Shown here piece after piece: positions 24,501 through 56,850 of a stretch of 64,000 nt of DNA (its first letter is position 1; every line of letters starts with the position of its first letter). Source of the DNA: Haliotis rufescens (taxonomy: Eukaryota); the NCBI RefSeq assembly GCF_023055435.1, contig NW_025963824.1, positions 32,674,001 to 32,738,000 on the forward strand, read 5' to 3'. The notes below the pieces were generated by a model, which had not been told where the DNA came from, did not search any database, and saw only the letters and a program-made list of their open reading frames with translations. Both the position numbers and the translations under genes were made by a program.

Positions 24501-27500
24501 TGCTGGGGTCACATGACCAGCTGGCCAGCCAATAAGGGGCTGATTCTGCCCACTAGATCAATGAGAAAACAGTGATCATGATGTTATGCTGCTGCTGCAG
24601 TGGGCAGTTGGGAGGAGGGAGCTGAGGGGGGATGTAGGAATCCTGCTTTACACAGGGACTATTTCTTTCTCCCCTCTACTGACCCTTGAGTTGTGTGTGG
24701 AGCTCACACTGGCCAGTGCTTGATGCTTGATGCTTGATGCCTGGTCCAGCCACAGTGTAACACTTGTTTGTTAACACACCGTATCTCATCTTTAGCCATG
24801 TAGTACGTAGTTATATACTGGCTTGTATCCCCCAGCTGGCAGCCTACTGATCCACTGGCCTGGGATGACACAGTTTCATGAATGTTTCATACTGACAGCC
24901 TTAAACAGACTCGCATCTGTGCTGAGTACTTGACTTGTTTGTAAGCTGTTCCCCCATTGGTACGGTCACATGTTGGTTGCAGTCGATCAAAGAGTGGCTT
25001 GATTTGGGTTGGGTCACCTGTTCTGATTTATGCTGCCAACATTTGGCAATGTTAATAATCTAAGGATTACCTGTTGTCGATATCTGAGATGGAATAAGAA
25101 CATTTGAAAGAGCGTACGGAGCAGAGTGTCGGGAGGGGTGGATGGGTGGGGATTTTTCTTAGCCTCAGCATATTTTGTTTCTCTCATTGTTTCAAGACAT
25201 GCATTTTCTCTCTGAAAATAGGAAACTCACAATTTGTGTTTAACAATAGGATTATTTACAGAGCATCCAGCATTCTTGGCGAACATTTTTGTTGTTGTAA
25301 AGCTAGAGCCAACTCTTTTTCAATATTTGCAAGTTATTTTTGAAACTTTAATACTTTTGCAAAAATAGATGGTAATTCATCTGTAAAATATGACAATAAG
25401 TTGCTTTCTCCTTTAGGTTGGGGGGACATGGGTGGCCCAGTCGCCTAAGGCACTGATATTCACTGTGTAGAGTTGTGTCCCTTGGGCATGCCAGAAGCCT
25501 ATGATTGTGGGTTCGAATTCCGGTTTGCCCTGATTATGTTTCTAGGTTTGTCAGTACCATACCTGTGCTCGTGGGTTTCACTGAAGTGGTAAACATCTGA
25601 GACCTTCTGGCTTTCCTCCCACATTAAGCTGACATGCCGTGATATAACTGGAATACTGTTAAAAGTGGAGTTAAACCCAACTCACTCACTCACTCCCTCG
25701 TTTAGGTTGGGCCTTGATTGCTCTATTGATAAGCACATGTGGATACCAATCCTCTGTTGTATTGACATCATTAGTATCATTGTTATCCTTCGCTGGACTA
25801 ACATTTAGTTTCTGAAATGGAAAGATTTTTCAGAAAAAAAAATGTCCTTATCTTATCTTAAGAAAATATGATGAAAAGGAGCCAAGAGAGACTCATTTTC
25901 AGAAACTCCAGTAATCTAGACTTGCCAACTATTTTCTCCCCCTCCTTAAAAATACTTAATATGCCTGTGAAGAAATTGAGGCCATTTGAGATGCATTGCT
26001 GGTCAAATTGAAAGAATTGGNNNNNNNNNNNNNNNNNNNNNNNNNNNNNNNNNNNNNNNNNNNNNNNNNNNNNNNNNNNNNNNNNNNNNNNNNNNNNNNN
26101 NNNNNNNNNNNNNNNNNNNNNNNNNNNNNNNNNNNNNNNNNNNNNNNNNNNNNNNNNNNNNNNNNNNNNNNNNNNNNNNNNNNNNNNNNNNNNNNNNNNN
26201 NNNNNNNNNNNNNNNNNNNNCTCGTGTTAGGTTCATTTCATGAAAAGTAACTAATAATTAAATACACCCAGCCAAAGGAACCTACTGATTTATTCATCAC
26301 GACTGGAATGAAGCACTGCATTGGGGTTGTACAGCTGGTGCCGGTGCCTTCGTCAAGTCATTCAAGACTTACTGCATACCATTGACAAAGTCCTACTGAC
26401 AGCAATCTTTGTTTATCTTGTTCTGTTTTTTTTATGTATTTGCAAAAAGTCTTTTGGGGGGACATTCCACATGTGAAATGTGAGTCAGCCCACACAGGTT
26501 TACAAAGAAACAAACCTGAAATTTATGGAGGAATTAACCTTTGTGAAAATGAGAACCATGACAGTCATTGCATGACAGCCTGCTGGGAGAAGTAGGCTGG
26601 CACTTACTCACAGACATAGTTCCCTCCTTTAAAAATATATGCCTGCTAAAAAGAGAAAAATCCAAATCCAAGAAAAATATTTTTTTACACTGTTTTTTTT
26701 AATGATTATTTTCTGTTGCATGTAACAATATCATTTTATCATGATTCTATTACTAATAACACTGGACATAGTAATGTATACTTGCTACACAAACTAAACA
26801 GTTATCAGCTAAACAATGAATGACAATTTGATAAAAAGTTGTTAAAAGAAGTTCGACCATCATACAGCACAAGCGCTGATCCATATTTTAGGGGTACAAT
26901 GACACACAGTGTTTGTTTGTTTGTTTGTTTGTTGTTTAAAGCAGCACTCAACAATTTTCTAGCTATATGGCGGCGGTCTGTAAATAATCGAGTCTGGACC
27001 AGACAATCGAGTGATCGATGTCATGATCATTGATCCACACAATTGGAATACGATGACATGCATCAACCAAGTCAGCAAGACTGACCACGTCGCCCCTTAC
27101 GGCAAGCAGAGTCACCTTTACGCAAGCGTGGGTTGCTGAAGACCTATTCTAACCAGGATCTTCACGGGTGTTAGTGTATATTGATGTAGAGTATTTAGTC
27201 GTGTAATGTTGTTGTGTGATCTCTTCTTTTAAGTTGGTTAAAATAAATATATCCATCAATCATGTACTTTAATTTTTTGGTTGTAGTTCCGTGCTCGAAA
27301 CCTGCTATGACAACGTCTTTAGTCATTTTAATTTCGAACTGTGTTTTATTTAATATCCGGGGGGGCACAGGTGGCCCAGTCGTCTAAGGCGCCGCGATTC
27401 GCTGTGCAGAGTTGCATCCCTTGGGGATGCCAGAAACCTATGATTGTGGGTTTGAATCCCGGTTCGCCCCGATTATGTTTCTAGGTTTGTCAGCACCATA

Positions 27501-48500: not shown

Positions 48501-51500
48501 CAGACTCTATTATTTACAGGCTGCTGTCATATAGCAGGAATACTGCTAAGTGCGGCGTTAAACAACAATTAAATCAAACAAAACAGTAAATCTTTGTTTG
48601 TTGAACAACGTTGAGTTGCCAAATTATGTTTTTAATAGGGGATTGTGTGGCCTAGTTGTCAAAGTTGCCACAATGCACTGTGCGATCGTGTAAGACGTGC
48701 ATGGATTATGATACTGTGGTGTTACATCTCAATCCAACCATGAAGATCCAGGGTAGAATAGGTCTTCAGTTACCCATGCTTGCCGTAAAAGGCGATTATG
48801 CTTGTCATACGAGGCGACTAACGGGATCGGGTGGTCAGGGTCGCTGACTTGGTTGATGCATGTCATCGTGTCCGAATTGCGTGGATCAATGCTCATGTTG
48901 TCAGTCACTGAATTGTCTGGTCCAGACTCGATTAATTACAGACCACAAAAAATCATATAGCTGGAATATTGCTGAGGTCGGTGTTAAACAAAAAAAACAA
49001 AACAAATAAAACATCTCACTCCCCCCTCTGTTGTTTCCAGCCTGTCCCCAAGTGTCAGCATTGCCGGACTGAAGCCGTTTACCAAGTACAAGTTCACTGT
49101 ACGTACGCACTTCCAGAACAACGATGTCAAGGTCAGCAGCCCGCTCATTGCTCAGACTCAGGAAGACAGTAAGTGTTTCGCCTAGGGCTGTTACCATGGT
49201 TACGATTCACTCACGTATTCGGTGAATCGAGCCGTATCCATTCACGAATTGAATTCGTTTTTCGTGGTCACTAGAATCGAATATTCATGAATATGCAGTT
49301 ATATGCATTTACATACCCTGACCCTTAAAATATCCATAAGAACATATTATATGCATACATTTCTTGAGTGAAAGTATTTTAGTCACTGGTCATTGTCGCA
49401 TTTGAACAGACACTAGTACCTGGATAAGTGAAGTATATTAATGTATAATAAATTAATAATTTACAAGCCATGTCAAATAATTAATTTTGTTATTGTTTCA
49501 CTGAATATCATAAATAATACATCAACTGCTGAATAAATTTTCGTATTCGTTACCCTATATTCATTATACGAATCATATTCGCCTTATAGTGGATGAAAGT
49601 AATTTGACCTTTGGTTTCATGCTGGATGACCGTATTTATTTGTGAAAAACATTGGGTTCTGCCTGTTATGTCTTTGTTTGGCACAGCATTTGTTTTTGAC
49701 TTTAGTAGTCAGTGAAAAATATTCTCTCTAACAAAATTCCCAGGCTCCATGTCCTCAAGTATTAGTGGCGGGTCGTCCCTCTCTGTCAACTCGGTCTTTA
49801 TGCTACAGCTTCTAAATGCAAGTTAAATGAATGTAATGCAAGGGAGATAACTCTGTGTCTCTCCTCCAGTCCCCAGTGCACCCACCAACATCACGTGGAT
49901 CGTGGTGTCTCCGGGCACTGTGGAGCTTCACTGGAAGCCTCCAGCCTCCCCCAACGGCGTCATCACATCCTACATCATCTTCTACAACAACAACAACAAG
50001 GTTCCTGACACCATGTGGCGCAACCTCACCCAGACAGGTAAGACCCTTGCCCAAACCTCACCCAGACAGGTAAGACCCTCGCCCAAACCTCACCCAGACA
50101 GGTAAGACCCTTGCCCAAACCTCACCCAATCAGGTAAGACCCTCGCCCAAACCTCACCCAGACAGGTAAGACCCTCGCCCAAACCTCACCCAGACAGGTA
50201 AGACCCTCGCCCAAACCTCACCCAGACAGGTAAGACCCTCGCCCAAACCTCACCCAGACAGTAGTTAGAAACAGTGCATTAAAAACATGTTTTGTTTGAA
50301 ATCTTTTAAGCAAAATCTTTTAAAAAATATCATTTGTACCATTAAGATGTTTTTATTAACTGGTGCATCAATATTTTAGAAAACCTGGGTTAGATTCCCC
50401 ACAATATTACAGAGCGTGAAACATTGTGTTTGAAATAGCGCCCGTCTGTTAGCCCTAGGCCCGTAAATCTTACGTCGGGCACATAGTTTAAAATTTGTAT
50501 GGGTCCTTATAACCTGCAGTAAATTTACGTGTCAATTTATATGTCACAATAAGCTGCAGTTTTTTAGAATGAGGATCTGAAGAGTTTGGTCAGGGCCTGC
50601 AGCTTCTAAAGTCTGTGGGTCCTGATGGCAGCCACACAATTTTGCTTATTTCAAGTACTGTCGTAAAGCCCTTGTGTCCTCACTGTTTATCTTGCTGGAA
50701 ATTAAAAACAATCTCGCCCAAGTAGACAAAAACAAACTAACCCAAGTAGATGAAACGATCCAAGAAGATCAGCTGGTCAGTTTCAAGAAGAGTTCTTTCA
50801 AAAGTCAATAACTCATTGCAATAGAAATGACCTTGACCCCTGATGTTTGTGTGCAGGGGGGCTGACACAGGCTACCGTGGATGAACTGACTGCCGCCTCC
50901 TACTTCTTCAAACTCCGAGCGTGTACCCGAGCAGGTCAAGGTCGTCCGTCACAGATCGTCGTGGTCTACCCGAACATCAAATGCACTAGCCAGACTCAGC
51001 AGCAGGAGCGATGCCGACCAGACACCATCGTCGGACCTGGTGCAAACACAGGTCAGTAGCAGTGTGTCAACGGAATAATCCTTGAAGACACGAAACTTCA
51101 GTACCCTGAAATGTTGTTACAAACAATTAAGTTGATCCGCAAGAGTTGCATCTGTTCATTGCCCTAATTTTAAGACCACCTCTGTGGGTTCGATCCCCAA
51201 CTGTGTCATACCAAAAGATGTTAAAAGATGGTACTTGTTGTTACCCTGTCTGGCGCTCGGTATTCAGGGGCTAAAACAAGGACTGGTCGGCTCGGAGTCA
51301 GCATTCTGTGTCTGAGTGGGGTATTCATGTTAAATTGCAGCATGGTATCTCAGTGAGCTAGCACCAAAATCTGCATCAGTCCTGACTAGTACAAGCAGCC
51401 CCACACACACACACACGTGCATGCACGTCGCAATATAAGTGCAATAATCTTGGACGTGACGTTAAAGTGGTAGAGCGTCCCAATTTCACTTCACATCACT

Positions 51501-54500
51501 GAATGACTTGGGGCTAAAAATAGCGAGGGAAATTCTGTGCTCAGTTTGTGAATAGAGAGATGGTGACGTTACTTCTGGAATGGTGCAATAGTGGAAATGG
51601 GACGGTGGTACTGGTCATAAGTGAGTGAATAAGTTAGGGTGTGAAACCAATGTTGAGATTTGATTGATGTGAAATTGTTATTTCAGGTCGACGAGACAAA
51701 CAGCTGGGAATAATTGTTGGTGTCACCATCGGCATTGTCTGCATCGTCATCTGCATTGTCGTCATTGTTTTTCGCAACAGGTAGGTGTGAGAGTCTCTCT
51801 GTAGGGAGTCGGGGAGGTGGGGTAGCCCAGTGGTTAAAGTGTTCGCTCATCACGCTGAAGACCTGGGTTCGATTCCCAAAATGGGTTCAATGTGTGAAGG
51901 CCATTTCTGGTGTACACGCCGGAATATTGCTAAAACCTGCCTAAAACCATACTTACTGTAGGGAGTCAGAGTTGCTTCCCTTTCGTGTTCCATGGACCTA
52001 TGATTGTGGGTGTAAATCCATTTTTGTAAGTTCATCAACACCATATGTGTGCTTGTGGGTTTCTAAGTCTTTATCTGTGAAGAGCTGGTTAGAATAGGCC
52101 TTTAGCCAGACATGCTTGCCGTAAAAGGCAACTATGCTTGTTGTTAGAAGCGAATTACGGGATCGGGTTTTCAGGCTCGCTGACTTGGTTCATGCATGTC
52201 ATCGTATCCGAGTTGCATATAGATTGATGCTCATGATGTCAATCACTGGATTGTCCGGTCCTGATGTGGTTGTTTACACACAGCTGTTATAGTTGGAATA
52301 TTTCTGAGTGTGGCGTTAAACAACAAGTAGACACTGTGTATCATCATACCCCAACAATATGGATCAGTGCTTGTGCTGTATCATGGTCAAGCACTTGTCT
52401 GCGATGATGCAGCCTCATTGTTGCACACTGGTGTTAACAAGATTAACTCCCTGTGTGACATCGAAACCCTTACAAGTACTCATTCTGTATGAGTGAGTGA
52501 TCGAGTGAGTGAGTTTGGTTTAACACGACTTTTAACAGTATTCCAGTTATATCGCGGCGTGTCAGCTTAATGTGGGAGGGGAGCACGAAGTGATGCAGGT
52601 TTCAGTCACTTACCACTTTGGTGAAACCCACGAGCATGGGTATGGTGCTGACAAACCTAGAAATGTATCGGGGCGAACCGGGATTCACACCCACAATCAT
52701 AGGTTTCTGGTGTGCCCAAGGGACGCAACTCTGCATAGCGTATGACAGTGGAGCACTGGTTTGTGATGATGACACAGCTGGAATGTAGCACAACACTGTG
52801 TCTTATAACAACATTCACTAACTCACGAGCAATCGTTCCTCTCTGCACTTTTAAAAGAAAAAATATGAAAAGAACAATTTATTAGTTTGCTCTTGTTTTC
52901 CCGATTACAGTGAGATTTGTCAGTATGCTTGACCTTTCTCTGTGTCGGTACTTTTGGCGACCTGGCACTGCTGATTGGATGTTTTTCTTTACAGATGTTT
53001 CAGATCCCGCGAACCTCCGCCTATTTACCATGGTAACGGCCACCTTCCAGGCCATGGCAATGGTCATGCTGTCCACGTGACGACCAACCGCCTCTCGGTG
53101 CCGAGCTCGGATATCGAGGCTCTCACACCTATGTTAAACTCACTGCAAGAGAACACTGAGTCGGATTCTAAGGTACGAATAGAAAGTTGGGTGTGGCATC
53201 CGCCGCATGAAAAAGTCATTCAGTTGCTTCTTAAGTTATTTAATCAGAAAATTGGTTTGAATAGGCTCCCAGAACTGTATTTCTAGTTGCAAGTTTTGGA
53301 TCAAGTGGACAAGGTTGGTTGTTTGAGTGTCATCAAATCCAGAAGGTTTGGGACATTGATCTTGGGGAATATGTACAATCATATTTCATGCATCTTCCCG
53401 AGGCAAGAGAGTTAACTGACTTGAAAAGTCCAGTTTCCACCCTTGCCGAACTAGACTGGAATTCCTGGGTTATGTCCCTTCCATGCCTCTCCTATGGACC
53501 AATCAGATTCAACCTGTCGTATCACTTGCATTTGCTTCAAACAAAATGGTGGTCCCAGTCAATACGATATGAATGATAACCAAGATCTATTTTGTGATGA
53601 AATGAGTCGTACATCTCTAAGTGCATCAAATCATGTGAACACCTTGATTAAAAACATGAAAAGATTTAGAAAATGCCTGTTGACAACGAGTTGGCGGTGC
53701 ACATGCTTTGCAAATCCTGCAATCGACAGAAATCGGTATTACGGTTTACGAATCGGATTTCGATTTCGTTGCCCGATTTTGATTGGACTATGCATAGACT
53801 CATTTGTCCAGCCAGAATGTAACTCCATAATACCAGCCTAGTTTGGCTTTTATAGTCAGTTTACTCCCTTGCCTCGGGCAGATGTATTTCATGGGGCCGG
53901 TGCTCTTGTTGTGACGTTGACACATGTTCTGTTTTAGGGAGATCGCAGTGTTAGAAATAAGAAAGATTGTCTGGCTGCCATCAGGACCAACTATCTTTAG
54001 AACCTGCAGGCCCTGACCAAACTCTTCAGGCCGTCGTTTAAAAAATGGACTTTCACATGTATTGATGCACTAGTCAATAGAATCATTGGTACAAATGAAT
54101 ACTTATCAAAAACATTTTGCTGAACCAGTTTTGAAAAAAATATTTTTTGAATCCACTATTTTTAACCAATGTCTGGGTGAGGTTTGGGTGAGTGTTTTAT
54201 CTGTCTGGGTGAGGTTTGGGCCAGTTTCTTACCTGTCTGGGTGAGGTTTTGGAGATTGTCTTATCTGTATGGGTGAGGTTTGGGAAAGTGTCTTATCTGT
54301 CTGGGTGAGGTCTGGGAGATTGTCTTATCTGTCTGGGTGAGGTTTGGGAGATTGTCTTATCTGTCTGGGTGAGGTCTGGGAGATTGTCTTATCTGTATGA
54401 GTGAGGTTTTGGAGATTGTCTTATCTGTCTGGGTGAGGTTTTGGTGATTGTCTTATCTGTATGGGTGAGGTTTGGGAAAGTGTCTTATCTGTCTGGGTGA

Positions 54501-56850
54501 GGTCTGGGAGATTGTCTTATCTGTCTGGGTGAGGTTTGGGAGATTGTCTTATCTGTCTGGGTGAGGTCTGGGAGATTGTCTTATCTGTCTGGGTGAGGTT
54601 TGGGAGATTGTCTTATCTGTCTGGGTGAGGTTTTGGAGATTGTCTTATCTGTCTGGGTGAGGTTTCGGAAAGTGTCTTATCTGTCTGAGGTTTGGGATAG
54701 TGTCTTATCTGTCTGGGCGAGGTTGTGCCACATGGTGTCGGGAACCTTGTTGTTGTAAAAGATGATGTAGGAGATGGGGAGACTCAGGGCTTCCAGTGCA
54801 GTTCCGCTGTGCCCGGAGACATGAGATCCACCTGCCACGGGCCTACAGGCAGGCACATTTTGAAAATTTGGGGATGGTACGCTGATTGTAAAGACCCAAC
54901 TCATCGCCTTCTGTGTTTTGTTTCAGGGGGGTGGAACACTGATCGTGACGCCGAACGGCGTGCGAATGAACGGGATCAGTCAGAGTTTGCAGAATGGACA
55001 TGTGCCCAATGGTCATGTGACCAGGCGAGAGGGTAATGTGCATCTTGGCAACCGGGGCAGCTCAGAGGTAAGGACTGTTGCTATGGTTACTTGCAGGGGT
55101 TCTGTTACTATGGTTATGGAGCATGTTGCTCCAAATATCTAAGATGCCTCTATTTGCTAGGCAGAGTTTCACCCCTTTGATTATGGGTTCGAAAACCGGG
55201 TCTCACTGATTATTTTTGTTTGTTTACCAGCACCATAACCCTGTTCTTGGGTTTCACCAAAGTGGTAAACGTCGACAACCTCCATCACTCAGGGTTTTCC
55301 TCCCCCGTCAAGCTGGCATATATTGATATAACTGGAATACTGTTCGAAGCAGCGTTACTTAGTGCTAAGATTACTTTGTGCAATGGGCCCCAGGTTAGAA
55401 CTGCTAGTTACGATCGTCTTAGCACTAAGAATACTTTGTGGAATGGGCCCCAGGTTAGAACTGCTAGTTACGATCGTCTTGGCACTAAGATTACTTTGTG
55501 CAATGGGTCCCAGGTTAGAACTGCAAGTTACGATTGTTTTATCACTAAGATCACTTTGTGGAATGGGCCCCAGGTTAAAACTGCTAGTTACGATCGTCTT
55601 GGCACTAAGATCACTTTGTGGAATGGCCCCAGGTAATGTTAGAACTGCTAGTTATGATCGTCTTGGCACAAAGATCACTTTGAGGAACAAGCCCCAGGTA
55701 ATGTTAGAACTGCTAGTTATGATCATCTTGGCACAAAGATTACTTTGTGGAATGGGCCCCAGGTTAGAACTGCTAGTTACGATCATCTTGGCACAAAGAT
55801 CACTTTGAGGAACGAGCCCCAGGTAATGTTAGAACTGCTAGTTACGATCGTCTTGGCACAAAGATTACTTTGTGGAATGGCCCCAGGTAATGTTAGAACT
55901 GCTAGTTACGATCATCTTGGCACAAAGATCACTTTGAGGAACGAGCCCCAGGTAATGTTAGAACTGCTAGTTACGATCGTCTTGGCACAAAGATTACTTT
56001 GTGGAATGGCCCCAGGTAATGTTAGAACAGCTAGTTACGATCATCTTGGCACAAAGGTCACTTTGAGGAACGAGCCTCAGGTAATGTTAGAACTGCTAGT
56101 TACGATCGTCTTGGCACAAAGATTACACTTTGGAATGGCCCCAGGTAATTTTATCAATTGGAGTAAGATCGTCACAGGATCCAGGTTTGATGTAAGTGTT
56201 TCCCTCAGATGATGCAATGTTGACTTGTTTGTTTCTACAAAATGTCTGTGTTTTCCTTTCAGGAGCATCATGGGCTCATTGCTGCCATCCAGGCCTCGTC
56301 TGAGAGTAGCCCTGGATCCACTGGCCGGGAGATGTCCACATACGCGGGGGAAAGTCTGGAGGAGATTGACGGGAGTCTGGAGGACGAGAGTCAAATGACA
56401 TCTGTTGTCACGGCACCCAATGGGGAGGCAGCCATGTTGAAGGTGACCGCCAGTGAAGGGGGAGACAAACCCCGTATCTCTCCATCTCGCCGCGGCAACG
56501 GCGGCACAGGGGCAGCTCAGGCAGCATCTTCATCCCCAACACTCAGGAACAACGGCAGCGGCGGCGGCGGCAGCAGCAACGCAGCTGACAGCACTACCTC
56601 ATCTCACCTGCCAAGCAGCAACACAACCTTGAGGCGGGATCAAGGTCAAGGTCACGAGGACCTACCTCCAACCCCTCCTCCACCTCTCGCAAGCAGCACC
56701 CAGAGCAGTACCTCTACTCAGGAATGTCCGGAGGCCCCGGGGACACATGTTGACAGTCTGCCCCCAAGAGTCGGGGCAGGGATATTACCTCATATGTTTG
56801 TACGTGATGGGACATGGGCAGGTTTAGAGCAATCTGACTCCGTGGTGTAG
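6209..56850 (+). CDS. PRTG: Protogenin-like (DCC/neogenin/IGDCC family) type I membrane receptor, 20 coding exons visible, 5' signal-peptide exon outside window
   Basis: Hand-spliced exons give one continuous frame (3746 nt plus 1 upstream base) with 4 Ig, 5 FN3, a TM helix and a tail. Five FN3 domains rather than six, and motifs RWPRARTVILKC, VQTLEDIPVACPEI and GIIVGVTIGIVCIVIC, resemble protogenin/IGDCC more than DCC/neogenin (recalled family knowledge, not a search). Confidence 0.8.
8085..8258 (-). mobile_element. SINE family 1 copy
   Basis: Full reverse-complement copy; TSD tccttgga. Confidence 0.9.
8298..8657 (+). mobile_element. SINE family 2 (tRNA head, ~350 bp, internal (CA)n, (CACCT)n tail)
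   Basis: Head GACCGCCTCCGTGGTCTAGTGG...GGTTCGATCCC; TSD cacgttctgt. Confidence 0.9.
9329..9501 (+). mobile_element. SINE family 1 copy
   Basis: A and B boxes, shared tail, (ACTC)n. Confidence 0.88.
10199..10370 (-). mobile_element. SINE family 1 copy
   Basis: TSD tcgctatcaga. Confidence 0.9.
10545..10981 (+). repeat. 42-bp minisatellite, ~10 copies
   Basis: tcataccactaggaatgtgataaatcatatcacgtccacgtg. Confidence 0.95.
10981..12650 (-). mobile_element. 5'-truncated decayed non-LTR retrotransposon (CR1/L2-group-like) reverse transcriptase fragment
   Basis: FQKAFDSVDR, GVRQRCILSPTLFNIFLNDL, LLFADDLVL, C-terminal LRLSNHKLNIELGRH...LCSTCSTIDDENH; (TTATC)n-type tail at ~10981-11005; inserted in the 42-bp minisatellite. 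Confidence 0.88.
13488..14056 (+). repeat. 25-27-bp minisatellite interrupted by a family 1 SINE
   Basis: gatccactagttgcaggtgtgtgatat. Confidence 0.9.
15866..16033. mobile_element. Tc1/mariner(pogo)-type MITE
   Basis: TA|CAGTAAACGACGGTTATAACGAA ... TTCGTTATAAACGTAGTTTACTG|TA. Confidence 0.8.
17095..17530 (+). repeat. 24-bp AT-rich minisatellite
   Basis: tgatatacaatatacaatattctc. Confidence 0.92.
18179..18975 (+). repeat. 30-bp minisatellite (~26 copies; degenerate continuation 19400-19640)
   Basis: atacacctacagctggggataacatggtat. Confidence 0.95.
19905..20700 (+). repeat. 27-bp minisatellite
   Basis: cctcactctagtggcagtctgggtccc. Confidence 0.95.
21675..24215 (+). repeat. ~103-bp satellite with nested variable 24-bp subrepeat
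   Basis: gtagtataagtgggttatgttccagtcattatagtg... plus (ccaccttgattccacttactccct) repeated 1-10 times. Confidence 0.95.
25420..25694 (+). mobile_element. SINE family 4 copy
   Basis: tttaggttgg flanks both sides. Confidence 0.85.
26021..26220. other. Assembly gap (200 N)
   Basis: Run of N. Confidence 1.
26910..27168 (-). mobile_element. Family 3 copy
   Basis: Reverse complement with (GTTT)n end. Confidence 0.85.
27359..27643 (+). mobile_element. SINE family 4 copy
   Basis: TSD tatttaatatcc. Confidence 0.9.
28379..28666. mobile_element. Shorter member of the CATCTTCC MITE family inserted in (CACCT)n; truncated opposite-orientation copy at 27915-28225
   Basis: ~70-bp near-perfect TIRs. Confidence 0.85.
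29536..30460 (+). repeat. 72-73-bp minisatellite
   Basis: gttggaaataagggtagcagtgtgttgttgtgtgacattgtaacactcgg... Confidence 0.95.
31373..32738 (+). repeat. Two abutting arrays: 25-29-bp (31373-31762) and 64-bp (31762-32738)
   Basis: cagcctctgtttaggagatgttc; ttaagtcctgtgttattacatctggtgtcatcactg... Confidence 0.95.
33581..33943 (+). mobile_element. SINE family 2 copy nested in a family 3 element
   Basis: TSD gtcaatcactgga; family 3 resumes at 33945. Confidence 0.88.
34905..35300 (+). repeat. 44-bp minisatellite
   Basis: attgtgccattgctggtcaggggatacaggtcatattcctggct. Confidence 0.92.
36096..36243 (+). CDS. Exon B: Ig2 N-half
   Basis: cattgcag|AT ... GAA AA|gtaagt, phase 1/2; FTREPLSQEAFVGGSARFECRIDAFPAPIFKW; not in the ORF track. 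Confidence 0.92.
36275..36840 (+). repeat. 21-bp minisatellite just after exon B donor
   Basis: ccccttgttagctgtgac. Confidence 0.95.
37151..37317 (+). CDS. Exon C: Ig2 C-half
   Basis: gtttcag|A ... ACG G|gtaagt, phase 2/1; SGVLHINNLTLEDTGLYRC. Confidence 0.92.
37472..38004. mobile_element. Second copy of the CAAGCTCCT MITE, inside a 51-bp minisatellite
   Basis: End-to-end similarity to 59734-60263; no clear TSD. Confidence 0.85.
38210..38338 (+). CDS. Exon D: Ig3 N-half
   Basis: atttcag|GC ... CAG G|gtgagt; GETAILECLVDGSPLPNVTW. Confidence 0.92.
38580..39050 (+). repeat. 104-120-bp tandem repeat containing exon E's 3' splice site
   Basis: gtttcag|atcgtaaatccctca four times (AG ending 38708, 38826, 38930, 39034). 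Confidence 0.92.
39035..39187 (+). CDS. Exon E: Ig3 C-half
   Basis: gtttcag|AT ... AAC A|gtaagt; NLKIRSVQKEDAGTYVC. Confidence 0.9.
39250..39462. mobile_element. MITE flanked by TTAA (GGGT...ACCC termini, Kolobok-like)
   Basis: ttaa|gggt...accc|ttaa; inverted cttgtgtacattgatcaatcggaa. Confidence 0.7.
39809..39957 (+). CDS. Exon F: Ig4 N-half
   Basis: ctttcag|TG ... GAG|gtgagt, phase 1/0; PIITTPPQTQRWPRARTVILKCEVDALPEATVRWYRDG. Confidence 0.92.
40058..40330 (+). mobile_element. Family 3 copy
   Basis: Full-length match to 40847. Confidence 0.85.
40472..40595 (+). CDS. Exon G: Ig4 C-half
   Basis: gcttcag|TTC ... AAC A|gtaagt, phase 0/1; SLVIYNVELKHDGYYQCIAENSVG. Confidence 0.92.
40847..41110 (+). 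mobile_element. SINE-like family 3 (~270 bp, (AAAC)n tail, no clear tRNA boxes)
   Basis: CGACCCGTGAAGATCC...GGTCTTCAGCAACCCATGCTTG...GCTGGAATATTGCTGAGTGCGGCGTTAAAC. Further copies near 620-, 3075+, 9950-, 26910-, 29055+, 33285+, 40058+, 45420+, 48400+, 48737+, 52075+. Confidence 0.85.
41252..41389 (+). CDS. Exon H: FN3-1 N-half
   Basis: gttgcag|AC ... AAT G|gtacgt; PKPPQGLKAHALTSKKIFVQW. Confidence 0.9.
41630..42180 (+). repeat. ~56-bp degenerate minisatellite
   Basis: tagacttacgacagtcgttgtgctaaggtgatcgtagc... Confidence 0.88.
42229..42396 (+). CDS. Exon I: FN3-1 C-half
   Basis: tgtgcag|GA ... GAT A|gtgagt; LKPFTNYSVYVKAFNKKGAS...VQTLED. Confidence 0.92.
42784..42955 (+). mobile_element. 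SINE family 1 (tRNA-derived, ~170 bp, (ACTC)n tail), intact copy
   Basis: A box TAGCCTAGTGG, B box GGTTCGATTCC; TSD ctacaatgactaaa. Other copies near 1587+, 1470-, 7178-7515+ (tandem), 8085-, 9329+, 10199-, 13551+, 28895+, 37028+, 42427+, 47420+, 51808+. Confidence 0.9.
43650..43835 (+). CDS. Exon J: FN3-2 N-half
   Basis: gctttag|TT ... AGA G|gtttgt; IQVEW...RNGIITEYEVHY. Confidence 0.9.
43960..44545 (+). repeat. 30-bp minisatellite
   Basis: gatgttactatggaaactgaaggggatgtt. Confidence 0.9.
44584..44706 (+). CDS. Exon K: FN3-2 C-half
   Basis: gttgcag|AT ... TCC T|gtaagt; VQPDEEYYVRVLARTKKGYP...WPW. Confidence 0.88.
44811..45167 (+). mobile_element. SINE family 2 copy
   Basis: TSD caattgtaagt. 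Confidence 0.9.
45931..46119 (+). CDS. Exon L: FN3-3 N-half
   Basis: tgtacag|TC ... CTA G|gtaagt; NASVVVVKW...YQI...YVLTDL. Confidence 0.88.
46097..47415 (+). repeat. 35-bp minisatellite made of exon L end plus donor
   Basis: First unit acaatatgtccttacagacctag|gtaagtacccag; ~37 units. Confidence 0.95.
47554..47800 (+). CDS. Exon M: FN3-3 C-half and FN3-4 N-half
   Basis: gtttcag|AC ... AAG AG|gtgtgt, phase 1/2; STEYEVTITARGNG...ILLTW. Confidence 0.87.
47915..48360 (+). repeat. ~37-bp minisatellite
   Basis: atgtgtcgaaagcctatgttaaagtatgggagtcacg. Confidence 0.92.
48737..49012 (+). mobile_element. Family 3 copy directly upstream of exon N acceptor
   Basis: Full-length match. Confidence 0.85.
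49041..49168 (+). CDS. Exon N: FN3-4 C-half
   Basis: tttccag|C ... GAC A|gtaagt, phase 2/1; GLKPFTKYKFTVR...QTQED. Confidence 0.9.
49870..50037 (+). CDS. Exon O: FN3-5 N-half
   Basis: cctccag|TC ... ACA G|gtaaga; PSAPTN...LHWKPPASPNGVITSYIIFY. Confidence 0.93.
50022..50260 (+). repeat. 32-bp minisatellite made of exon O end plus donor
   Basis: aacctcacccagacag|gtaagaccctcgccca, ~7.5 units. Confidence 0.95.
50857..51051 (+). CDS. Exon P: FN3-5 C-half and stalk
   Basis: gtgcag|GG ... ACA G|gtcagt; YFFKLRACTRAGQGRPS. Confidence 0.9.
51174..51498 (+). mobile_element. SINE family 2 copy with rearranged head
   Basis: Body matches 8298 and 44811; the head fragment agtggtagagcgtcc appears displaced to ~51466. 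Confidence 0.8.
51687..51780 (+). CDS. Exon Q: transmembrane helix
   Basis: tttcag|GT ... AAC AG|gtaggt, phase 1/2; LGIIVGVTIGIVCIVICIVVIVF followed by RNR. Confidence 0.93.
52490..52745 (-). mobile_element. SINE family 4 copy, antisense
   Basis: Reverse-complement match to 3531. Confidence 0.85.
52995..53172 (+). CDS. Exon R: cytoplasmic 1
   Basis: tttacag|A ... AAG|gtacga, phase 2/0; CFRSREPPP...LTPML...SDSK. Confidence 0.85.
53391..53884. mobile_element. MITE with CATCTTCCCGAGGCAAG termini and 9-bp TSD
   Basis: TSD tatttcatg on both sides; long TIRs. Confidence 0.88.
53943..54831 (-). pseudogene. Inverted pseudo-copy of exon O plus downstream intron (source ~49895-50663)
   Basis: Reverse complement reads WI..SPGTAELHWKP*...SYIIFYNNKVPDTMWHNLAQT with a TGA, indels and donor gtaag changed to ataag. 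It continues into the 32-bp array and collinear intronic sequence. Confidence 0.93.
54170..54725 (-). repeat. Antisense version of the 32-bp array, ~17 units
   Basis: ttatctgtctgggtgaggtttgggagattgtc. Confidence 0.93.
54927..55067 (+). CDS. Exon S: cytoplasmic 2
   Basis: gtttcag|GGG ... GAG|gtaagg, phase 0/0, 141 nt; GGGTLIVTPNG. Confidence 0.85.
55360..56150 (+). repeat. 60-65-bp minisatellite
   Basis: ccccaggt(aatgt)tagaactgctagttacgatcgtcttggcac... Confidence 0.92.
56263..56850 (+). CDS. Exon T: last coding exon, Ser/Pro-rich tail ending QSDSVV*
   Basis: ctttcag|GAG in frame with ORF 56242-56850; GC-rich coding-like composition. Confidence 0.85.
   Translation, partial: EHHGLIAAIQASSESSPGSTGREMSTYAGESLEEIDGSLEDESQMTSVVTAPNGEAAMLKVTASEGGDKPRISPSRRGNGGTGAAQAASSSPTLRNNGSGGGGSSNAADSTTSSHLPSSNTTLRRDQGQGHEDLPPTPPPPLASSTQSSTSTQECPEAPGTHVDSLPPRVGAGILPHMFVRDGTWAGLEQSDSVV

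Follow-up and report, generated by a model that had tools for sequence, protein, structure and literature searches.

A 64,000-nucleotide stretch of the Haliotis rufescens genome (NCBI RefSeq assembly GCF_023055435.1, contig NW_025963824.1, positions 32,674,001 to 32,738,000 of the forward strand; hereafter the window, with position 1 as its first letter) contains a protogenin-like gene that carries, in the intron between its exons R and S, an antisense copy of part of its own exon O together with the adjoining splice donor, a minisatellite and intron sequence. This copy lies inside a miniature inverted-repeat transposable element (MITE), referred to here as MITE2, and takes the place of the middle of that element. 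We consider it probable that this downstream arm is a single-copy Pack-TIR, formed when gap-filling repair in place replaced the middle of MITE2, a transposon with terminal inverted repeats (TIRs), with sequence of the host gene. As part of the same explanation, any exon skipping, circular RNA or editing that results from the inverted arrangement is likely to be at most a minor by-product. The most fitting description of the feature is the capture, through a transposon, of an exon-intron junction of the very gene that hosts it; the feature is also another intronic inverted repeat.

Anatomy of the inverted copy and of the transposon enclosing it

Gapped alignment revealed that the reverse complement of 53946-54834 copies 49895-50660 at 82-87% identity, a stretch that runs from the 3' part of exon O through the donor and the 32-bp array into the intron. 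Three blocks aligned with the downstream arm, namely 49892-50030 (87% identity, 4 indels), 50242-50373 (84%) and 50561-50660 (83%), while the 187 bp at 50374-50560 are unrepresented in the antisense copy. A search for repeats identified 300-nt arms at 50022-50321 and 54109-54408 that are 82% complementary. It also returned many shifted versions of these arms, owing to the 32-bp tandem array that each side contains, as well as a distinct 100-nt inverted pair (50561-50660 and 53946-54045). Throughout the whole genome (1.33 Gb in 615 contigs), the exon, array and proximal intron matched at only two sites, both of them local (E = 3e-89 and 1e-87 for the local antisense matches), copy counts from these genome searches being lower bounds. 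The parental copy is located about 3.7-4.9 kb upstream of the insert, in cis and in inverted orientation. Exons P, Q (transmembrane) and R sit between the two arms. The copy ends 95 nt before the exon S acceptor (54926/54927), and MITE-derived sequence extends to 54869, 57 nt short of the same acceptor. The exon-derived part of the copy, pseudo-exon O', carries an in-frame TGA and frame-breaking indels. An earlier sequence-only reading of the window had described an inverted duplicate of ~49895-50663 at 53943-54831, situated in the R-S intron 95 nt before the exon S acceptor with P-Q-R between the arms, and covering most of exon O, its donor, the 32-bp array and intron; repeat search, gapped alignment and genome search confirmed the duplicate, and the position and coverage likewise held, apart from the missing 187 bp. 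That reading had also suspected that the distal ~120 bp might be a shared MITE end, correctly so, as 50422-50660 is a copy of a dispersed MITE (MITE1) and MITE fragments flank both ends of the copy. Its contrast between a copied exon of the host gene and a pair of SINEs (short interspersed elements) requires correction, as the repeat is an inverted pair of MITEs, one of which captured the other's flank.

A 237-bp consensus was built from 26 aligned genomic copies of the dispersed repeat. Its ends are mutual inverted repeats (CAGTGTTCGAAATAA and TTATTTCAAACACTG), and perfect 8-bp target-site duplications (TSDs) flank five copies (L005, L009, L022, L024 and L025), with near-perfect TSDs at five more. 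The whole-genome search with segment 50419-50662 returned at least 40 scored copies from 851 candidates. In its length, its lack of coding sequence, its 15-bp TIRs beginning with CAGTG, its 8-bp TSDs and its presence in hundreds of copies, the repeat resembles MITEs of the hAT superfamily. The inverted ends and 8-bp TSDs of this 237-bp repeat identify it, at the level of sequence, as a hAT-type MITE, the superfamily being assigned from just two features, TSD length and the start of the TIRs.

MITE2 is a chimera in which both ends of a single element enclose a non-transposon insert (54046-54823). Junction 1 falls in a 7-bp microhomology, GTGGATC in exon O (49895-49901) and GTAGATC, with one mismatch, in the MITE consensus. 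At junction 2, the 14-bp filler lies beside a T-rich similarity. Four derived bases of the right part of MITE2 are common to MITE1, each of them found in only 1-5 of the 26 other copies; the left part has one derived base in common with MITE1, which is frequent in the family, along with 9 and 8 private differences. The whole-genome search found the chimeric element as a single, unamplified copy. We also considered a retro-copy of the pre-mRNA primed at a SINE tail, as the homology stops at the end of a repeat. This origin was rejected, since the element has TIRs and 8-bp TSDs, and its left half lies beyond the insert.

We propose that the copy arose through a break inside MITE2, which would have been resident in the R-S intron of the protogenin-like gene at the time. 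One broken end may have primed on exon O via the 7-bp microhomology GTGGATC, and repair synthesis would then have proceeded through the array and intron into the neighboring MITE1, where the new strand could have been recaptured by annealing in MITE homology. Such recapture would account for the homology of the arms stopping exactly at the MITE end. A later deletion would have taken the equivalent of 50374-50560.

The copy is shared by another abalone. Short-read contigs of a differently labelled abalone (X13), the only relative compared, already carry the insert. These contigs cover 49562-50047, 50232-50605, 53849-54024, 54006-54226 and 54681-55050, differ from the window at 70 of 2485 aligned positions (~2.8%), and span all junctions of both arms except the array interiors, with the same edges as the window. 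Kimura two-parameter distances between the arms were 0.15 for the exon-derived part, 0.21 for the intron part and 0.17 for the MITE part, or several times the divergence between the two taxa. Judged by these comparisons, the inverted copy is real DNA and much older than the split of the two abalone taxa, and the repair event itself would likewise predate that split.

The 32-bp arrays diverged as well. Each unit of the sense array consists of the last 16 nt of exon O and the first 16 nt of the intron, and every full unit holds CAGGTAAGA, giving seven tandem exon O donors with identical 16-nt context on each side. The RNA contigs discussed below use only the first donor; given the 32-nt period, the second and third would shift the reading frame. 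The sense and antisense arrays are 82-87% complementary to one another, units within each array are 89-96% identical, and the antisense array displays a higher-order pattern of 3-4 units. Since each array is internally homogeneous and fixed differences (GT>AT and CCC>ACA) distinguish the two, the pattern indicates that each underwent separate concerted evolution and expansion after capture.

Table 1. Coordinates of the gene, array and transposon features in the window.
Feature	Position	Strand	Description
MITE2, whole	53946-54869	-	middle (consensus ~49-137) replaced by captured gene segment
MITE2 right part	53946-54045	-	consensus 138-237, 87% identity
MITE2 left part	54824-54869	-	consensus 6-48 aligned at 54864-54824, 38/41 positions (93%); degenerate terminus probably reaches 54869
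MITE2 right-hand TSD	53938-53945	-	6/8 positions match partner
MITE2 left-hand TSD	54870-54877	-	6/8 positions match 53938-53945
Junction 2 filler	54046-54059	-	14 bp, between MITE2 right part and captured intron
Antisense intron copy	54060-54168	-	copy of 50262-50373; 82-84% identity
Antisense 32-bp array	54170-54724	-	~17 units; donor GT now AT in 15
Pseudo-exon O'	54709-54823	-	decayed antisense copy of exon O 49902-50037; 87% identical
Parental segment	49895-50373	+	5' arm of predicted duplex; 3' 143 nt of exon O, donor, 32-bp array, 112 nt of intron
Sense 32-bp minisatellite	50022-50261	+	~7.5 units, 7 full
MITE1	50422-50660	+	full-length copy directly downstream of parental segment; 86% identity to consensus positions 3-237
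Exon O	49870-50037	+	168 nt; N-terminal half of fifth FN3 domain of protogenin-like gene; donor CAG/GTAAGA at 50037/50038
Exon P	50857-51051	+	195 nt; C-terminal half of fifth FN3 domain; from RNA contigs, splice sites and translation
Exon Q	51687-51780	+	94 nt; transmembrane helix; 23-residue hydrophobic run flanked by basic residues
Exon R	52995-53172	+	178 nt; juxtamembrane cytoplasmic segment; from RNA contigs, splice sites and translation
Exon S	54927-55067	+	141 nt; acceptor AG at 54925-54926

Predicted pairing of the arms and splicing of the host gene

Cofolding of 49885-50380 with 54055-54840 yielded a free-energy difference (ddG) of approximately -429 kcal/mol with 408 intermolecular pairs, compared to -9 to -39 kcal/mol for six control segments of the same pre-mRNA. 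In the global minimum free energy structure of 49800-54960, 508 long-range pairs connected 49895-50670 with 53938-54831, and the donor at 50037/50038 was paired. Exon O alone paired with the pseudo-exon at a ddG of -125 kcal/mol, versus -16 +/- 4 for shuffled sequences. These models suggest that an imperfect duplex of ~500 bp around exons P-Q-R can in principle form in the pre-mRNA.

The spliced state of their contigs showed that two sequencing runs of two studies (X15 and X17) are RNA. The blocks joined in X15 record 9 (5816 nt) and in X17 records 15 and 16 are 49870-50034, 50854-51048, 51684-51776, 52991-53170 and 54925 onward, and placement of these joints at GT-AG boundaries gives canonical O-P-Q-R-S splicing from the first donor. 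Exon Q is listed in X17 record 16, while X15 record 9 has an unlisted block of corresponding size (93 nt). Neither O>S, N>S nor R>P was found among the listed joints of these contigs, including the junctions 49168>54927 and 50037>54927 that the sequence-only reading had put forward. Likewise, the contig consensus contained no A>G change in exon O; across 49870-50034, both X15 record 9 and X17 record 15 had 0 differing letters. One miRNA-seq run, informative only if its sample expresses the gene, placed 2 reads on the stretch as a whole, neither of them on the arms. A protein without an isoform label represents, under NCBI naming, one model per gene, and the three NCBI abalone proteins, one per species, bear no such label. 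Assembled contigs drop rare variants, and what they rule out is therefore a major effect on splicing and not a minor one.

Canonical splicing probably prevails on kinetic grounds: as splicing proceeds co-transcriptionally, excision of the O-P intron (819 nt) can be complete well before the polymerase arrives at the 3' arm, which lies 4 kb downstream. Were skipping to occur, loss of exons P, Q and R (467 nt) or of exons O through R (635 nt) would in either case shift the frame. Exon S, read in the +1 frame of the skip, encodes a 35-36-residue tail ending at a stop at 55034-55036, 31 nt before the end of the exon (55067). The predicted skip product would be a secreted ectodomain, its message likely escaping nonsense-mediated decay (NMD) by the 50-nt rule.

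Selection for pairing was assessed by comparing G-U-compatible with A-C transitions between the arms (15 vs 11), and this comparison gave no signal; the arms differ in addition by 21 transversions and 9 indel events. Divergence was similar among the pseudo-exon, intron and MITE parts, and the arms appear to have drifted apart like neutral DNA.

These findings bear on whether the inverted copy is instead a working cis-regulatory RNA element, in which pairing hides the exon O donor and places the N/O region beside the exon S acceptor, with a regulated skip of O/P-Q-R, a P-Q-R circular RNA or ADAR editing of exon O as the outcome. Such a role would fit the predicted ddG of the arms (at most -39 kcal/mol for the controls), the inclusion of the donor among the long-range pairs, and the stable pairing of exon O by itself. 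The arms also occupy introns flanking P-Q-R, which is the loop-out geometry of inverted Alu pairs (PMC13019027), either skip leads to the short tail and NMD-escaping stop described above, and the copy was kept in two taxa. However, retention across 2.8% divergence is expected of neutral DNA, and the arms diverged at a neutral rate, with many transversions and indels and no pair-preserving excess. The contigs of both RNA runs show canonical junctions only and an exon O free of A>G, NCBI holds a single unlabelled protein model per species in three abalones, and the small-RNA run gave no arm reads. Moreover, the many other inverted repeat pairs in these introns would compete for pairing, and the in-frame stop and frame-breaking indels of the pseudo-exon likewise speak against a working element. 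We consider such a regulatory element unlikely. We likewise give a low probability to a restricted form of the effect, in which some tissue or stage with fast elongation or slow O-P splicing would allow the ~500-bp duplex to generate a P-Q-R circular RNA along with an O>S or N>S skip encoding the secreted, NMD-escaping ectodomain, exon O perhaps being edited.

Taken together, these results partly support the sequence-only reading. The several-hundred-bp duplex that it envisaged, burying the exon O donor, holds in silico. As for the skipping, back-splicing and editing that it attached to this duplex, the contigs are canonical and unedited, a low-level effect lying beyond their resolution; any effect on splicing, circular RNA or editing is hypothetical and would be minor.

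The identity of the host gene was established from exons searched and translated singly rather than as a joined spliced protein. A one-exon protein search led to XP_046543737.1, annotated as "protogenin-like", of Haliotis rubra, which used as a query recovered a cluster with proteins of H. cracherodii, H. asinina and H. rufescens. XP_046334848.1 (H. rufescens) contains, without a mismatch, the translation of each of exons O, P, Q, R, S and the last exon of the gene, and the next relatives are vertebrate IGDCC4 and protogenin. Pfam matched fn3 in exon O (E = 6e-8), with fn3 halves and Ig domains further upstream in the gene, and matched no family in exons P, Q, R, S or the last exon. A 202-residue Logan protein in the ortholog cluster (P0175) consists of the last-exon open reading frame only and was set aside as uninformative on isoforms. 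The H. rubra protein is only 878 residues long, and its C-terminus is exon O translated in the +1 frame, with WKPPASP leading into TASSPPTSSSTTTTTRF. The apparent cause is a 1-nt difference within the run of five C at window positions 49948-49952, which truncates the annotated protein and may represent either a homopolymer error of the assembly or a real variant. Elsewhere in the window, a run of 200 N at 26021-26220 marks an assembly gap or masked sequence.

The introns around the arms contain additional repeats. Extremely high-copy repeats occupy 51090-51487, 51790-52880 and 53279-53875, where contig depth was 1e4-6e5 for the RNA runs and as high as 6e6 for DNA; their loose ends with a tRNA-like GGTTCGATCCC motif suggest tRNA-derived SINEs. 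Inverted pairs among the intron repeats, for example 51967-52019 with 52681-52733 and 52521-52663 with 55215-55357, could compete with pairing of the arms. Within the S-T intron, 55332-56209 is taken up by a long array of tandem units of ~60 bp, of which two were found at 55358-55477, and a translated motif of this array recurs up to ~56200.

Alternative origins of the copy

Several points weigh against the Pack-TIR explanation. The order of the repair events is a reconstruction, and the four derived sites shared with MITE1 are a small number, identified by comparison with 26 family copies that had been selected for similarity to MITE1. In addition, the 187-bp gap needs either a second event or another path, such as a template switch at the T-rich stretch with the 14-bp filler. 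With respect to splicing, the RNA evidence consists of assembled contigs of unspecified tissue and stage, which drop rare isoforms, back-splice junctions and low-level editing, and the extreme stability of the predicted duplex leaves room for some co-transcriptional pairing.

Inverted duplications a few kb apart can arise without transposons, and a plain local inverted segmental duplication caused by a replication-fork or fold-back error might have copied 49895-50660, including MITE1, to a site beside an unrelated MITE fragment or to one that such a fragment flanked only later, without any initiating break in a resident MITE. The right part of MITE2, which has the rare derived bases of MITE1, was probably copied along, as this model would have it. 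In contrast, the left fragment (consensus 6-48) is not derived from MITE1, as seen from its private differences and from a single shared base that is common in the family. It is also placed exactly where the missing half of a single MITE belongs, the outer flanks match one another at 6 of 8 TSD positions, and fragments of the same family on both sides would be unlikely by chance. We regard a segmental duplication of this type as improbable and favor capture by MITE2.

Long-read assemblies are known to fail by creating inverted duplicates a few kb apart. Even so, a false inverted copy from chimeric or fold-back long reads is so improbable that it can be dismissed: the arms are 13-18% divergent and their arrays unequal in length, where an artefact would yield almost identical copies, and the independent X13 contigs cross 53946, 54045-54060 and 54823-54869.

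Relation to known systems and significance

Single-copy Pack-TIRs of animals are TIR DNA transposons that acquired host sequence from close by through gap filling, independently of transposition (Tan et al. 2021, PMC8277862). Those published display a cis bias, most lying <5 kb from the parent, have microhomology at one or both breakpoints in 68% of cases, and have breakpoints internal to the transposable element, with a median gap of 4.6% of the element (PMC8277862). The parental copy of such an insert typically lies in cis within 15 kb. The plant counterpart of these elements is the Pack-MULE. The abalone element resembles a Pack-TIR in that TIR termini surround a non-transposon insert, the parent lies on the same chromosome at <5 kb, the breakpoints are internal and show microhomology, and the element is single copy and located in a host gene. 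It differs in that the captured piece comes from the element's own host gene and is antisense to it, and in that the insert carries a splice donor together with a minisatellite whose expansion continued (7 vs ~17 units). Furthermore, the parental segment adjoins another copy of the same MITE, the probable source of the second-end homology, the gap amounts to ~38% of the element, compared to the published median given above, and the host is a mollusc.

Inverted repeats in introns are also known to promote the formation of circular RNA. Inverted Alu pairs in flanking introns promote loop-out exon skipping (PMC13019027). As in such pairs, the abalone gene has complementary sequences in inverted orientation in the introns on either side of several exons, these sequences are predicted to form a stable stem, and one transposon family is present in both arms. 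In contrast to the Alu pairs, the complementarity consists mostly of captured gene sequence and minisatellite rather than transposon, one arm includes an exon with its donor, and only the canonical isoform was seen in the abalone contigs.

A further comparison is to the editing-site complementary sequences (ECS) of ADAR substrates, for example the intronic ECS that pairs with the GRIA2 Q/R exon. Like the exons of such substrates, exon O is coding sequence whose imperfect complement lies further downstream in the pre-mRNA, within an intron. Unlike these, the abalone complement lies 4.7 kb away with three exons in between, exon O is without A>G in two RNA data sets, and there is no sign of selection on the pairing.

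Given the normal splicing in the RNA data, the abalone element is of value chiefly as an annotated example. It also cautions that a highly favorable duplex prediction does not in itself imply an effect on splicing. It represents a clean and datable molluscan case of a DNA transposon copying part of a host gene by break repair, in which an exon, its splice donor and a growing minisatellite were copied and put back antisense into the same gene. The outcome is long intronic complementarity of the sort supplied in primates by Alu pairs. Should the skip or circular RNA reading be true, an accident in the repair of a transposon would have equipped a receptor gene with a soluble-decoy isoform. If the pairing does alter splicing, then there would be a direct link from the formation of a Pack-TIR to the emergence of a soluble form of a receptor or of a circular RNA.

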